Assembly (NCBI GenBank): GCA_002189035.1
Contig: NEEC01000002.1
Coordinates: 124,001 to 188,000 of the forward strand
DNA length: 64,000 nucleotides
Reading direction: 5' to 3'
DNA from: Utricularia gibba
Lineage: Eukaryota > Plantae > Magnoliophyta
Within the stretch, counting starts at the first letter, position 1, and each line of letters starts with the position of its first letter. The position numbers and the translations under genes are program-made. Of the stretch, positions 1 to 6,412 are shown one piece after another. Under the pieces are notes generated by a model. That model saw only the letters and a list, made by a program, of their open reading frames with translations. It was not told the origin of the DNA and made no database searches.

Positions 1-49
1 ATCAACAAATCTAGGCGGCTGGTGTCTCTCTTTCTCCTGCGTCTCCCAC

Positions 50-510
50 CAAAATGTGTAAGAAATACACCTCCGGGGTGTGGAAATTTATAGAAGAGGT
101 GCTGCCTTTGCCTTTGCCTTGTGTGGGGAGAATACTTATCAATGCCCATGCTTCCTTGTGCGGACTTTACGACCACCCCCTTTGAACATTCAAACCAATG
201 CATTTTTCTTGTTGACTGCTTGAATTGTATGTACGGAGAATCTTCTAGAGAATTTTGGTCGATTTTGTCACCAACACCAACAATGATTAATTTATTTGAG
301 TCTTAAAAGTTGTTCCCTAAAATATAGGAAAAATAAGGCAAATACTTTAATTTTTTATTTGATTTGGCGTTTAACTTAGTTATAGCAAAAATTTATAAAT
401 TATCGAAAAATAAGTTATTCTTTACATTTTATCTTATTTTTATATTTTTTTCGTTTTTTATGTTATTAATAATATTTTTTGGATTTAAAATTTAGGGATT
501 CAATTTTAAA
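50..510 (-). repeat. Copy A of a diverged ~450-bp direct duplication (promoter region; partner ~1123-1560)
   Basis: Shared blocks such as aaatacacctccggg (63 and 1134, offset 1071), tgaacattcaaaccaatgcatttt, aattttggtcgattttg, aaaataagttattcttt and ggatttaaaatttaggg occur in the same order in both copies. Confidence 0.9.
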
Positions 511-759
511 GTTTAATATTTAGTATTTATAACTTGGGAATATTATATATCAAGTTTTCGTAATTTATGGTTGGATGTTGATCAAACGCATGTTATTGTT
601 GCAAACTCAGAAGCTGAATATATTATTATTAAGGATAAGGAAAGCAAGGAGAGGCACCAGACGGCTCTCTGCTTTCTTTCAGTAGAAGACGCCAATGCGA
701 ATCCCCGACAGAGGAACTTTATTGTAATCGACTCGACGGGGGAGAGTTGTTGTTCAGGA

Positions 760-1115
760 TCAGGGGTGGCCGACTGGTGGCCATGGGAACGGCGTCCCGT
801 AGGGAGTTGGGTGGATCTCAATCACACGCTTCGATTCTCCCACCGGCCCCGAAATCTTCCTGTTGCTGTAGGGCGATGATGCTGCCGCAGCCGCACCTTC
901 AAAAAAGACAACCACCACCACCACCACCAATATATTTCTCAGTGATCTACGGCTAAACGAAAAGAAAAGAAAAGATCCATCTATCTATCTATCTATCAAC
1001 TGGCATATTGATCTGATTAACAGAGACGAGAAACAAAAGTGAGCTCACCTTGGGGGATCAGCGCCGCCATGATGAAGAGCAAGATTGCGAAAACAACTGC
1101 AGCTGTCTTGGCCAT
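760..1115 (-). CDS. Putative small secreted proline-rich peptide precursor (67 aa, 2 exons: 1115-1049, 896-760)
   Basis: Manual splice with donor CAAG|gtgag and acceptor ttttgaag|GT gives MAKTAAVVFAILLFIMAALIPQGAAAAASSPYSNRKISGPVGESKRVIEIHPTPYGTPFPWPPVGHP*. Hydrophobic N-terminus resembles a signal peptide; TATAAAT lies about 42 nt upstream of the ATG. No family recognised. Confidence 0.7.
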
Positions 1116-1122
1116 GGAGATC

Positions 1123-1560
1123 AAATATGTATGAAATACACCTCCGGGTTGTGGAAATTTATACAAGAGGAGCTACCTGCCTTGCCTTGTGTGGGGAGAA
1201 TCCTAATCAATGCCCCTGATTGCTTCCCCTTCTTGTGCGGATTTTACGATCACCCCCATTTGAACATTCAAACCAATGCATTTTTCCTGTTCACTGCTTC
1301 AATCATATGTACGGAGAGAATCTTTTAAATAATTTTGGTCGATTTTGCCACCAAGACCAGTAATTTTTTTGAATCTTAAACGTTGTTCCCTAAAATATAC
1401 AGGGAAAATAAGGCAAGTACCTTAATTGCTTGATTTGATTTGATTTGATATTTACCTTAATTATACCAAAGATTTGTAAACTACCCAAAATAAGTTATTC
1501 TTTGCATTTTTATTCGGTTTTTATGTTATTAATAATAATTTTGGATTTAAAATTTAGGGG
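1123..1560 (-). promoter_or_regulatory. Copy B of the duplication = promoter of the peptide gene, TATA box at 1157-1163 (minus strand)
   Basis: Minus strand reads cttgTATAAATttccac; copy A has ctcttcTATAAATttccac at 86-92. Confidence 0.7.
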
Positions 1561-1740
1561 TTCAAAAATGATTTAGGGTTTAGGGTTTCACAATTTTTTA
1601 CCGTTACTTATTTAGTGTTTAGGATTTCATGATTGGGATTTAGTTTTTTGGATTTTAAATTTAAATTTTAGAGTTTAAGATTTAAAATTTAGAATTTGAT
1701 ATTCAATTTTACGATTTAATATCCAAGAATTTAAGATTTA
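1553..1740. repeat. Short interstitial TTTAGGG (telo-box) motifs followed by an AT-rich degenerate TTTAGG/TTTAAG-like tract
   Basis: TTTAGGG at 1553-1559, 1572-1578 and 1579-1585, then repeated tttag/tttaa variants. Confidence 0.5.
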
Positions 1741-1819
1741 TCTAAACTGCCTGAAAACTGAACAGCAGACATTTCTGCCTTATCAATCATGAATAAGGCT
1801 ATGTCTGTATGTCTTCTTC

Positions 1820-2430
1820 ATTGGGCGATCTGCATCAGCTCTCCGCGGAAGCTGCCGTGAACAGATATTGCCGGCATGTATAGTACGAGTTCCTCGGATC
1901 GCCGGCTTGGCTTGGTATCTCATCTTAATAATCAATCTGTCATCTAACTTTTGTAATTATCACTCTGCCCCCCAGGCCTACGGTGCCGGCCAACTGGAAA
2001 TGCTCGGCGTTTAGCCGCAGAGGCCGCGGACCATCCTCCTCGTCATTGTGTGTCCGATGATGCTGTTACACCGTTTTTATTGGGAGTTGGGAAAAAGGAG
2101 AAATCTTCGAAAGCCCCGTAGGATTTATTTGATCTACGAGTAGTCATTGGTTCAGGACAAACATGCTAGGAGGAGGAATAGGATAGGATGGACCAGCACA
2201 ATCACCACCGGATTCAAGGCAGCAGTCAGATGAGCTTTCGCTAGCACGGCATTTTCACAATCACAATCACAATCACCCCGCAGGCGTAAATGCAATGCCG
2301 TAAATGCGGCGGCAGTTATTCTCATTATGAATGTGTGAAAAGAATCAGGAGCGCACCATCCGCGCACGGCGAAATTGTGGTGGGTTGTCGTGATGCTGAT
2401 CTCCGCCTCCGAAACGGGCTCTCGTCCCCC
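1820..2430 (+). pseudogene. Degenerate MATE transporter relic (tandem paralogue of the adjacent MATE gene)
   Basis: 1973-2014 reads QAYGAGQLEMLGV* then PQRPRTILL (intact gene: QAYGAGQVEMLGVYMQRSWVILL). 2183ff reads IGWTSTITTGFKAAVS (intact: LGWTVMVAIGFNAAIS). 2348ff reads GAHHPRTAKLWWVVV (intact: GASHPRTAKLSVLVVV). In-frame TAG and large deletions. Confidence 0.8.
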
Positions 2431-3997
2431 TCCTGACAACCTTTGATCCCCAAGGTCAACATTGTGTTGCTACGACGTTTCGGAGTCGGAGCTCCCCTGG
2501 GAATGGGATGGCTAAAATGGGCTGGGCTGGGCTGGGCTACGCACCCATGACCTCACATGGTGGACACCGCAAAATTGCGCCACGTCACATTCAAAACTAC
2601 ACACTTGGGACCATCAATCTTTTACTGTCGGGTGATATCTGATTCATTCACATGGCAACGAGTGGCATTCAAAAGAGAGCACACAGAAATCAATCACCCC
2701 CAACACCTTAAAATAGTGTTCTGAATATTGTTTTTACTTTTGAAAAATGGCAGAAATAAAAATATTTTTAAGAATTAAATGATAAAAATAAAAATGAGAA
2801 TTATAAATAGCTATTTTCTTATTTTTATTTATAACTCATTTTTTTAGCTACAGTAATAATTAAAAAATAAAAATAGGGAGTGCTTTGTGCAAAGCATCCC
2901 AAAATTTTTACCAGCATAGATTAAGTGCAAAACGAAATAATGGATAATTGCCTTCTTTTTGGTCTACCAGTCCGTGAGTGGAAGGGGTTTTTGGCAAATG
3001 AAAAAGCGGCGGCGCCCCAGGGACGGGGGCCTGTCTGCCAAAAAGCATCGCACTATTTATTACAAATACAAATATAGCCCTCGATGCCCACGTTTGCGTG
3101 TACCTCGTACGCAAGAAACCAAAGTGGTACTTGTGTCAATGGAAGCCTGGGAACCTAACTTCCGCCGATCACGTGATCCGGGCCCACCCACTCCCTCCCT
3201 GCCTCCCTCCATCATTGATTTCCCAACCAAGAAACCAAGAACTCAAAAGATTACCGCTCCCACCCCCCAACAACGGAATGGAGGGGAGGAAGACGGGTTC
3301 AATGCTTCTCTGATAAACTGCGGTTGCATCCATGCAAGCTGCTAAGCTTTGAGTGTTACCCCCACCCCACCAAAAGAGCCCTTTTGGGTTCTGCAATTCC
3401 AGTTCCATCCACCCTTTTGGAAGACGGTACGGAAGAAGAAACAAAACAAGTCATTCATACAGGCTACAGCCGCAAGTCAACAAACGGAGCATCGGAAGAG
3501 CGACCCCATCAGCGGTCGGAGCCATTAGAAGAAGAGCGACCCAAAATGCCTCTCAGCAGAAGCAGCCCAACGTCGCCACCTTTACAGCTGCACCCATTCA
3601 TTTCTCCGGTGCGACATGTCGCTATTCCATTCCACGTTATTCAATTATTTCCCTCCTAACTCTTATCGATGGTGCCGCTTCTCGCATCTCCTCATCCATG
3701 ATGACATAGATAGTGTTTCCAGTTTTGAACCCCTCCCTCTGCGTTAACTTCCATGGAGGCGAGGAGGCGAAAACCGAAATGACTTGTGTAGGGGAAGACC
3801 ATTTTCGACGGTGTCTGCTCCTCCGCCACGTCACTATAATGCATTTTTTAAAAGTATTTAATATATAATTATTATTAATCCAACCAGCCAGCCTTCCGCC
3901 TCCGCCTACTCCCTGACTTCGAAATAAAAGACCACGTCTCCTCTCTCTCCTTCAACACCATCGTGGTTTCCGCACACCACCCAACCAGGGGAAAAAA

Positions 3998-6412
3998 ATG
4001 GCGGAATCTCCCCGGCTTCCTCTTCTTCCGCCGGTCACCGCTGACGACGACTACCAGGAGCCAGAGCTTTCGATACAGGAGTATTTACACCTCCGCAACT
4101 CCAACCAGTCCTTCACCATCACTTCCTTCGTCGACGAAGGCGGCGACATCCCTCCCATCGCCAAGTCCAAAGACTTCTTCAAGGCATTCAACCACGAGGG
4201 GAAGAAGCTCTGGTACTTGGCCGGCCCTGCGATTTTCACATCGATTTGTCAGTACTCCCTCGGCGCCATCACGCAGACCTTCGCCGGTCACGTCGGAACC
4301 CTAGATTTAGCCGCCTTCTCGATTGAAAACTCCGTAATCGCTGGATTGTCGTTCGGCGTCATGGTACGTTGTGTCAGATTTGCCCCTAATTTTCGCTTAA
4401 GTGTTTGCGCTAATCTTGAGATTTGTTTTTGGAGTACGTAGCTGGGAATGGGAAGCGCGTTGGAAACGCTTTGCGGGCAGGCATACGGCGCCGGTCAGGT
4501 GGAAATGCTGGGCGTTTATATGCAGAGATCTTGGGTTATTCTCTTAATCACCGCCTTCGCGTTGATGTTTCTGTACATCTTCGCGGGGCCGTTCTTGCTG
4601 CTGATCGGCCAGGATAAAGAGATATCACGAGTCGCCGGAACTTTTGCACTGTGGATGATACCACAGCTGTACGCGTACGCGCTCAATTTCCCGATCGCCA
4701 AGTTTCTGCAAGCGCAGAGCAAGATCTCGGCGATGGCGTGGATTTCGGGCGTAGGGCTGGTGTTACACGTTTTTCTTAGCTGGTTCTTCATGCTTAAACT
4801 CGGTTGGGGCATGGCCGGCGGCGCGGCAGTTCTGAACTTCTCGTGGTGGTTCATCGTTGTGGCACAGTTGGTTTACATATTTTCCGGTACCTGCGGCCGC
4901 GCGTGGGATGGGTTTTCAGTGAAGGCGTTTCGCAATCTATGGGGCTTCGTTCGGTTATCCCTGGCTTCCGCGGTCATGCTCTGGTATTCTTGTTGTGTTC
5001 TCGAGTGCTCTATTATTTATTATTATCGTCACTTTTTTTGAATTCTGCACATAAAGGGAATTGAATTATTAGGAGTGTTTTTGTTCGTATATTTATTGGC
5101 ATACGGAGCTGATAATGATATTATGATGTGTGATTGATTTCATTCCATTGATTAATTGGACCCAGACTCCAGACCCCAGACCCCCAGTTGTGATGCTACC
5201 AGAAGCTCCTCAGAAATTAATTAATGACCGTCCTGATTATGTCTTCCTTCCCACGTGTTCCCACATTCATTGTTTGTGGAGTTGGTAGTTATCTTTTTAT
5301 GTTCTCGTTTTCTGGAGCAGCTTGGAGACGTGGTACTTTATGGCTCTCATCCTGTTCGCTGGCTACTTGAAGAACGCGGAAGTCGCCGTGGATGCCTTGT
5401 CTATATGGTACGCAGGCTTTGCAGCTTGCCGGTTCTCTCTTTCTTGGGTTGGGAATTGGGATGTGGAGGTCATGACTTGTGGTTTGGTGCAGCACCAACA
5501 TACTGGGCTGGACGGTAATGGTGGCAATCGGCTTCAATGCTGCAATAAGGTAGGCAGGTGGGCGTAAGTCACGGCCCGGCCTGGCCCCCCATTGTGTTTT
5601 CTTTTATTGTGTGTTGAGTAAGAAGGAAGGATGCAACGACACGTGGTGGTGGTGGTGCTGCAGTGTGCGCGTGTCGAACGAGCTGGGAGCCTCGCACCCC
5701 CGGACGGCCAAGTTGTCGGTGTTGGTGGTGGTGGCGTGGTCGTTCCTCCTGGGCCTCATCATCTCCATCGCCCTCCTCGTCTTCTACAAGCAGTATCCCT
5801 ACCTGTTCTCCAGCAGCAGCCAGGTGATTCAAGTGGTGTATCAGCTCACTCCCCTTCTCGCCTTCTGCATCGTCGTCAACAACATCCAGCCAGCTCTCTC
5901 CGGTACCCGCACCCACCCACCTTTTTCTGATTTCTTTTATCTTGCGTTCGTTCCCAATCCGTCGGGTGGTGCAGGAGTGGCCATTGGAGCCGGATGGCAA
6001 GCCCTGGTAGCGTACGTCAACATCGCCTGCTACTATCTCTTCGGCATCCCCTTGGGCCTCATCCTGGGGTACGCCCTCGATTTAGGCGTCAATGTAAGTT
6101 CAAAAGTGAAGAACAAAGTGCGAGTAGAGTAGCCGTAGTAGCGTCAAGTGATGCATGCATTGTGTGGTTTGATGGTGGGTGTTGTTGCAGGGAATATGGT
6201 ACGGGATGGTGTCGGGAACCCTGCTACAAACTCTGATTCTCTTTGTGATCGTTGAGAGAACCAACTGGGAGAAAGAGGTGAGTGAGTGAGTGAGTGAGTG
6301 AACCATTTCATTGCCAACTGACGACGGAGCACGATGGGTGTAGGCTTCCGCGGCGGCTCAGAGGATCAAGGCCTGGGGAGGCGAAGACGACCTGAAGCCT
6401 AATGGATGCTAA
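3998..6412 (+). CDS. MATE/DTX efflux transporter (TT12/DTX29-32-like), 8 exons, intact
   Basis: Motifs SIENSVIAG.SFG.MLGMGSALETLCGQAYGAG, FLQAQS, RVSNELGA.HPRTAK, QP.LSGVAIGAGWQ. All GT-AG junctions keep frame to the stop at 6410-6412 (...WGGEDDLKPNGC*). Confidence 0.95.

Follow-up and report, generated by a model that had tools for sequence, protein, structure and literature searches.

The question raised by this locus is whether positions 760-1115 of the window, by which we mean the whole stretch of 64,000 nt analysed here, contain a genuine spliced gene for a small secreted Pro-rich protein and, if so, whether its product can be placed in one of the described families of plant peptide signals. 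We address the gene and its transcripts, the predicted precursor and its likeness to known families, the repeated unit to which the gene belongs and, finally, the functions that can be proposed for its product.

A spliced gene on the minus strand

Translation of the sequence gives a 67-aa protein from a spliced CDS of 204 nt, carried by two exons on the minus strand with a 152-nt GT-AG intron between them. The parts of the gene, in the order of transcription, are the following:

1116..1232, minus strand: 5' leader, to the extent that the spliced contig X3 record 6 spans it; an upstream ATG is lacking, and the motif TATAAAT lies within it
1049..1115, minus strand: coding part of exon 1, with the ATG at 1115-1113, residues 1-22 and the first base of codon 23; found in the RNA contigs X3 record 6 and X2 record 4
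897..1048, minus strand: intron of 152 nt, phase 1, starting with GTGAGC and ending with TTGAAG; missing from X3 record 6
760..896, minus strand: coding part of exon 2, with residues 23-67 and the stop codon TGA (762-760); covered over 760-876 by RNA contigs of X1, X2, X3 and X10
596..759, minus strand: 3' UTR of ~164 nt; X1 record 1 (596-876) stops at 596, near AATAAT-type motifs

The 67 coding nt of exon 1 encode MAKTAAVVFAILLFIMAALIPQ, corresponding to the n- and h-regions of a signal-peptide-like N-terminus. The intron falls inside codon 23, and exon 2 provides the Ala-rich c-region, the spacer SSPYSNRKISGPVGES, a dibasic KR (residues 45-46, nt 831-826) and the Pro-rich C-terminal tail of 21 aa, VIEIHPTPYGTPFPWPPVGHP (nt 825-763). 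A two-exon gene with GT-AG splicing had been proposed in a sequence-only reading of this DNA, and exons 1115-1049 and 896-760 do translate to the 67 aa that it quoted; the hydrophobic signal-like N-terminus of ~26 aa, the spacer, the KR and the 21-aa tail ending at the stop, which it had described, are all read in the spliced translation. Its remark that the protein was missing from the list of open reading frames is also borne out, and the gene can be called hidden because that list carries its exons only as two separate ORFs, of 49 and 56 aa. No further copy of the 67-aa protein was found inside the 64-kb window by tblastn, and the exon-2 region is open in several frames. As for the intron, it contains three microsatellites, given here on the plus strand: (ACC)6 at 911-929, (AAAAG)4 at 955-975 and (ATCT)6 at 975-997.

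Transcription was followed in 12 listed RNA-type runs; words of 600-1300 occur in nine runs of one organism and in one run of a second label, and the RNA contigs of four runs were compared with 400-1600. At least seven RNA runs, which come from three studies, show expression. The decisive molecule is X3 record 6, a contig of 481 nt in which letters 1-255 lie on 623-876 and letters 273-459 on 1046-1232, with 17 letters in between. These 17 letters are the 20 nt of 877-896 minus a 3-nt ambiguity, the triplet CAC being identical at 894-896 and 1046-1048, and since they are thus fully accounted for, the contig agrees precisely with the 896/1049 junction. This placement follows from the arithmetic of the contig; the junction is not listed as a joint, because 877-1005 was repeat-masked in read mapping on account of the intron microsatellites. 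The sense strand is the minus strand, since only this placement of the intron gives canonical GT-AG ends. The gene is therefore transcribed from the minus strand and its intron is removed at 1049/896; RNA across this junction was among the checks that the sequence-only reading had proposed for its model, and X3 record 6 is spliced there to the base. Over exon 2 and the 3' UTR, the contigs of X1 (596-876) and X10 (665-876) are identical to the window.

One contig counts against our preferred explanation of the locus. X2 record 4, the sole X2 contig across the intron, has 122 letters vs 158 in the genome between 876 and 1035, followed by the intron bases 1035-1048; it keeps the intron in a form 36 nt shorter. 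It represents pre-mRNA, an intron-retaining isoform or DNA present in the library, and the product of such an isoform would stop after 32 aa. The shortfall of 36 nt is plausibly a difference in microsatellite length, and this contig suggests that the length of the intron is polymorphic between accessions.

In the mRNA model 1232..596 the 67-aa ORF starts at the first AUG and is the longest sense ORF, the next being of 21 aa, and no uORF precedes it. The comparison of X3 with the window gives 10 substitutions and one indel, all of them in 254 nt of UTR, and none in the 184 nt of CDS checked; the differences listed are at 657, 660, 662, 695, 720, 723, 1176 and 1194, with the indel at 702/703, every one in the UTRs. 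Under a uniform rate, the probability of finding changes only in the UTRs is 0.004 with 10 events, and 0.02-0.04 when clustered changes are merged to 6-7 events. That the X3 differences are confined to the UTRs speaks, modestly but genuinely, for constraint on the coding part.

The predicted precursor and the known peptide families

The presence of a signal peptide was judged from hydropathy and from the -3/-1 pattern over residues 1-29. K3 is the single Lys in residues 1-3 and is followed by a hydrophobic core of 17 residues (4-20), in which the Kyte-Doolittle means of 9-mers are 2.6-3.6; after the core come P21-Q22-G23 and then an AAAAA c-region, where small residues at -3 and -1 permit cleavage after residues 25-30. 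On these grounds the N-terminus looks like a signal peptide of classical shape. The predicted product after its removal has ~39 aa, with 23% Pro and no Cys, and its charged residues are 4 K/R vs 2 E; N-glycosylation sequons were looked for in this mature part and none was found. A spacer of 18 residues lies between the signal-like region and the tail, the last 21 aa, in which Pro makes up 33% and Lys, Arg and Cys are all missing. The features of secreted peptide precursors seen in this protein are thus a length below ~120 aa, a signal-like N-terminus, the lack of Cys and the Pro content of the tail.

Among the known families, the nearest resemblance is to the CEPs. Their precursors consist of a secretion signal, a region that varies, a domain of 15 aa and a short extension at the C-terminus, positions 7-15 of the domain are most commonly [PS]GHSPG[VI]GH, and all of the 162 CEPs known in 2014 were encoded by a single exon (PMC4197245). 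The protein described here is short as well, and in it a signal-like N-terminus is followed by a variable spacer and by a Pro-rich C-terminus free of Cys, which closes with ..VGH and a short extension; when PFPWPPVGH is anchored on its GH, P7, P11, V13, G14 and H15 of the domain can be matched, that is 5/9 positions, a score reached by 9% of composition-preserving shuffles of the mature region (p = 0.09). The differences are that positions 8, 9, 10 and 12 (G, H, S and G) are unmatched, that the N-terminal xFRPT of the domain cannot be aligned without an insertion and that the gene has a 152-nt intron, in contrast with the single-exon CEP genes (PMC4197245). The sequence-only reading had spoken of a loose echo of CEP falling short of a true match, and the 5/9 positions, the shuffle test and the intron agree with that description.

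A second group of families is formed by the sulfated peptides. In PSY, RGF and CIF peptides an Asp-Tyr pair opens the mature peptide and is the site sulfated by TPST, and several of the PSY, RGF(GLV) and CIF families have two exons, with the intron directly after the signal peptide. Like the present protein, they have a precursor of the secreted type whose mature region is C-terminal, rich in Pro and includes Tyr, His and Pro, whereas the Asp-Tyr motif is missing here, both Tyr residues following a Pro; as had been claimed from the sequence, the sulfation motif is lacking, the only Tyr contexts being P-Y-S and P-Y-G with no acidic neighbour. The Pfam models of GLV1-2 and RGF3 gave no match. 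With PIP/PIPL, IDA/IDL and CLE precursors the protein shares architecture and size, and a His at or next to the end of its Pro/Gly-rich C-terminus is reminiscent of their ..GH and ..HN ends, whereas the cores SGPS..G.GH, PIPPSxPSKRHN and RxVPxGPNPLHN are all missing. The C-terminal core of PIP/PIPL is SGPS..G.GH; here a single SGPV (residues 38-41) is present, which is too far from the terminal GH (24 residues) to form a contiguous PIP core.

Searches for relatives were equally blank. A word-indexed search with the mature region and with the signal-peptide exon returned no candidate among 5.8 billion protein clusters, and phmmer with the 44-aa exon-2 product found no true relative among 1.84 billion representatives, a size at which a query of 44 aa can reach only close relatives. 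Three phmmer matches were rejected: all are long and repetitive (WD40 arrays and an artefactual 11-fold repeat), and their scores build up from one repeat to the next. One metagenome match sharing GPVGESKR was set aside as a chance resemblance, a stop codon preceding it. With hmmscan against Pfam-A, neither the exon-2 product nor the 56-aa ORF matched any family at E <= 10. The ESM Atlas, whose output shows that Pfam models exist for IDL5, GLV1-2, RGF3 and CLE_plant (PF21529, PF27951, PF27884, PF27922), returned small secreted peptides of Streptophyta as neighbours, with unnamed clusters at 0.79-0.82 and IDL5, GLV and CLE clusters at 0.74; these scores lie below the level counted as evidence, and the neighbourhood is used as a lead only. 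A full-text search for the tail motifs and for secreted peptides of Utricularia brought up no relevant literature.

The blank protein searches are to be read as the sign of an unannotated family, not of a unique one, because the genome's own proteins are missing from those sets: even the intronless 822-aa PPR-DYW gene and two MATE exons of the window have no record in the gene-position collection. The claim that the protein matches no described family stands, with Pfam and both large protein searches blank, the CEP match at the level of chance and Asp-Tyr absent, and we file the gene under none of the CEP, PSY, RGF, CIF and PIP families.

The repeated unit, its 5' end and its genomic setting

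The region upstream of the gene occurs twice in the window:

1123..1565, minus strand: upstream/promoter block belonging to copy A; within a tandem unit of ~1071 nt, this is the part that is repeated
1..503, minus strand: upstream block of copy B (52-503) and a distinct 5' leader (1-51); the coding region of this copy starts just past the left edge of the window

Blocks 1123-1565 and 52-503 are 81% identical overall and 84-90% identical in sub-blocks of 100 columns, and since the block recurs at an offset of 1071 nt, we have a tandem array, with the gene as one of its units. RNA points to an expressed paralogue. X2 record 5, a contig of 105 nt, aligns with the signal-peptide exon over 56 positions, 5 of which differ, and its loose end matches the leader of copy B (window 1-25) over ACACCAGCCGCCTAGATTTG. 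In X2 the word depth is 841 for this paralogue contig vs ~48 for the copy A gene, a difference of ~17-fold, from which it follows that a paralogue with a copy-B-like leader is expressed much more strongly. Membership of the gene in a tandem family is thus supported. Upstream of the 20-25 nt that they share, the leader of X2 record 5 departs from copy B of the window; the source of this contig may be a third copy, another allele or a spliced leader.

Regarding the 5' end, the sequence-only reading had placed a TATA box 42 nt upstream of the coding sequence. The motif is there: TATAAAT occupies 1163-1157, 42 nt ahead of the ATG, and it is also kept in the tandem copy. Its role as the sole promoter is ruled out, as RNA contigs run past it, X2 record 4 up to 1214 and X3 record 6 up to 1232 plus 22 unmatched letters, and at least some transcripts therefore start upstream of TATAAAT; the transcripts include the motif, which cannot mark the only start of transcription. 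In transcript sense, the 22 unmatched X3 letters beyond 1232 end in ...GATATACGGGG directly before the match, and they could stem from an upstream exon, from a difference between accessions or from an adapter or template switch that marks a 5' end.

Farther upstream, a telomere-type repeat, TTTAGGG x2.4, telo-box-like on the strand of the gene, lies at 1572-1588, and degenerate AT-rich arrays of 7, 14 and 21 nt lie at 1610-1740; these elements sit ~460-620 nt ahead of the ATG, where the repeated unit has its distal end. They are followed at 1800-2650 by a GC-rich block (49-58% GC) flanked by AT-rich stretches, in which there is no convincing ORF (the longest, on the minus strand at 2152-2439, has 95 aa) and no Rfam match; indeed, positions 1-4000 contain no Rfam family. 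This block may represent a gene, small or non-coding, that has escaped annotation just upstream of the peptide gene; it could be the source of transcripts reading into the latter.

The 64-kb window is gene-dense, with MATE, ABC-B, AP2, GT17, formin, PPR-DYW, Exo84 and LRR genes, and its GC content is 50-58% in genic and ~20% in intergenic sequence. The best relatives of the GT17 ORF are 77-81% identical and come from across the Lamiales families, those of Genlisea aurea are 71-73% identical, and its own protein is not in the database. At 16853-17905, and over the whole window, conserved neighbour genes are 77-81% identical to their best Lamiales relatives. The setting points to a long-branch, compact and fast-evolving Lamiales genome, unannotated in the public sets used and probably that of a bladderwort (Lentibulariaceae).

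Possible functions of the product

We tentatively favour the explanation, which we rate as a serious possibility falling somewhat short of probable, that the locus is a real protein-coding gene for a secreted, Pro-rich and Cys-free pre-pro-peptide of 67 aa from which an apoplastic ligand is set free, the gene belonging, as one of several copies, to a tandem family restricted to its lineage, in a Lamiales genome that is gene-dense and unannotated. The N-terminal 25-29 residues would direct co-translational entry into the ER and would then be cleaved off; prolines of the tail would undergo hydroxylation and perhaps arabinosylation; near K45-R46, a cut of the subtilase type would release a C-terminal peptide of ~17-21 aa, (VIEI)HPTPYGTPFPWPPVGHP; and this peptide would act as an apoplastic ligand, most plausibly of an LRR receptor kinase, by analogy with peptides of the CEP, PIP and CLE type. 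We infer the processing and ligand steps from a layout common to the precursors of these types. To our knowledge, a dibasic KR is not a defined processing motif in plants, and this counts against the proposed cut. In a more far-reaching version, which we regard as rather unlikely, the family would be an unrecognised one of Hyp-type peptide hormones with a ..PWPPV-x-HP C-terminus, confined to fast-evolving minimal-genome Lamiales (probably Lentibulariaceae), arranged in tandem, strongly expressed and perceived by an LRR receptor kinase of its own.

The signal-like N-terminus and the Pro-rich Cys-free product fit equally well a secreted protein with no signalling role, namely a small Hyp-rich component of wall, mucilage or secretory fluid, or else a defence peptide, the 39-aa product being used whole, and the paralogue depth of 841 vs 48 in X2 together with the tandem amplification is commoner for bulk or defence products than for hormones. 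We consider this doubtful, although conceivable: the mature part is weakly charged, with no K/R in the tail, unlike cationic Pro-rich antimicrobial peptides; neither extensin (SPPPP) nor AGP-type repeats nor a GPI signal occur in it; and 39 aa is short for a structural protein. It can be proposed, alternatively, that the locus is a transcribed ORF of recent, lineage-specific origin whose function is slight or nil, its secretion-like N-terminus and Pro-rich tail being tolerated and not selected. The blank searches of 5.8 billion clusters and 1.84 billion representatives, the several open frames of the exon-2 region and the intron-retaining contig, with its truncated product of 32 aa, speak in this direction; however, those blanks mostly reflect an unannotated genome, in which even the 822-aa PPR lacks a record, and the 0 differences in the checked CDS vs 10 in the UTRs, the use of the first AUG, the retention of several tandem copies with a conserved upstream block and the expression in at least seven runs of three studies make this explanation unlikely.

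A very divergent CEP (or PIP), with ...P.P.VGH taken as a CEP domain that has degenerated and is extended by one residue at the C-terminus, is very improbable in our judgement. The layout is indeed that of a CEP, from the signal through the variable region to the C-terminal domain with its short extension, and PFPWPPVGH matches five of the nine best-conserved positions, 7-15 (PMC4197245); such a score or a better one is, however, reached in 9% of shuffles, the xFRPT half of the domain needs an insertion to be aligned, the PIP core SGPS..G.GH is missing and an intron is present here, while the CEPs of the 2014 survey all had a single exon (PMC4197245).

On balance, the pre-pro-peptide explanation describes a gene that appears to be new at the level of the family, of a kind, the small secreted Pro-rich peptide precursor, that is well known, and with a putative role in signalling. 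Orphan precursors of this kind are numerous in plant genomes, and for most of them function is unproven. Whichever explanation holds, the locus shows that real, spliced and constrained small genes can be absent from gene sets, with no similar protein in billions of predictions. If the tail is a bioactive ligand, it would add a lineage-specific family of peptide hormones, and the locus would offer a compact, tandemly amplified test case for the origin of new secreted signals.
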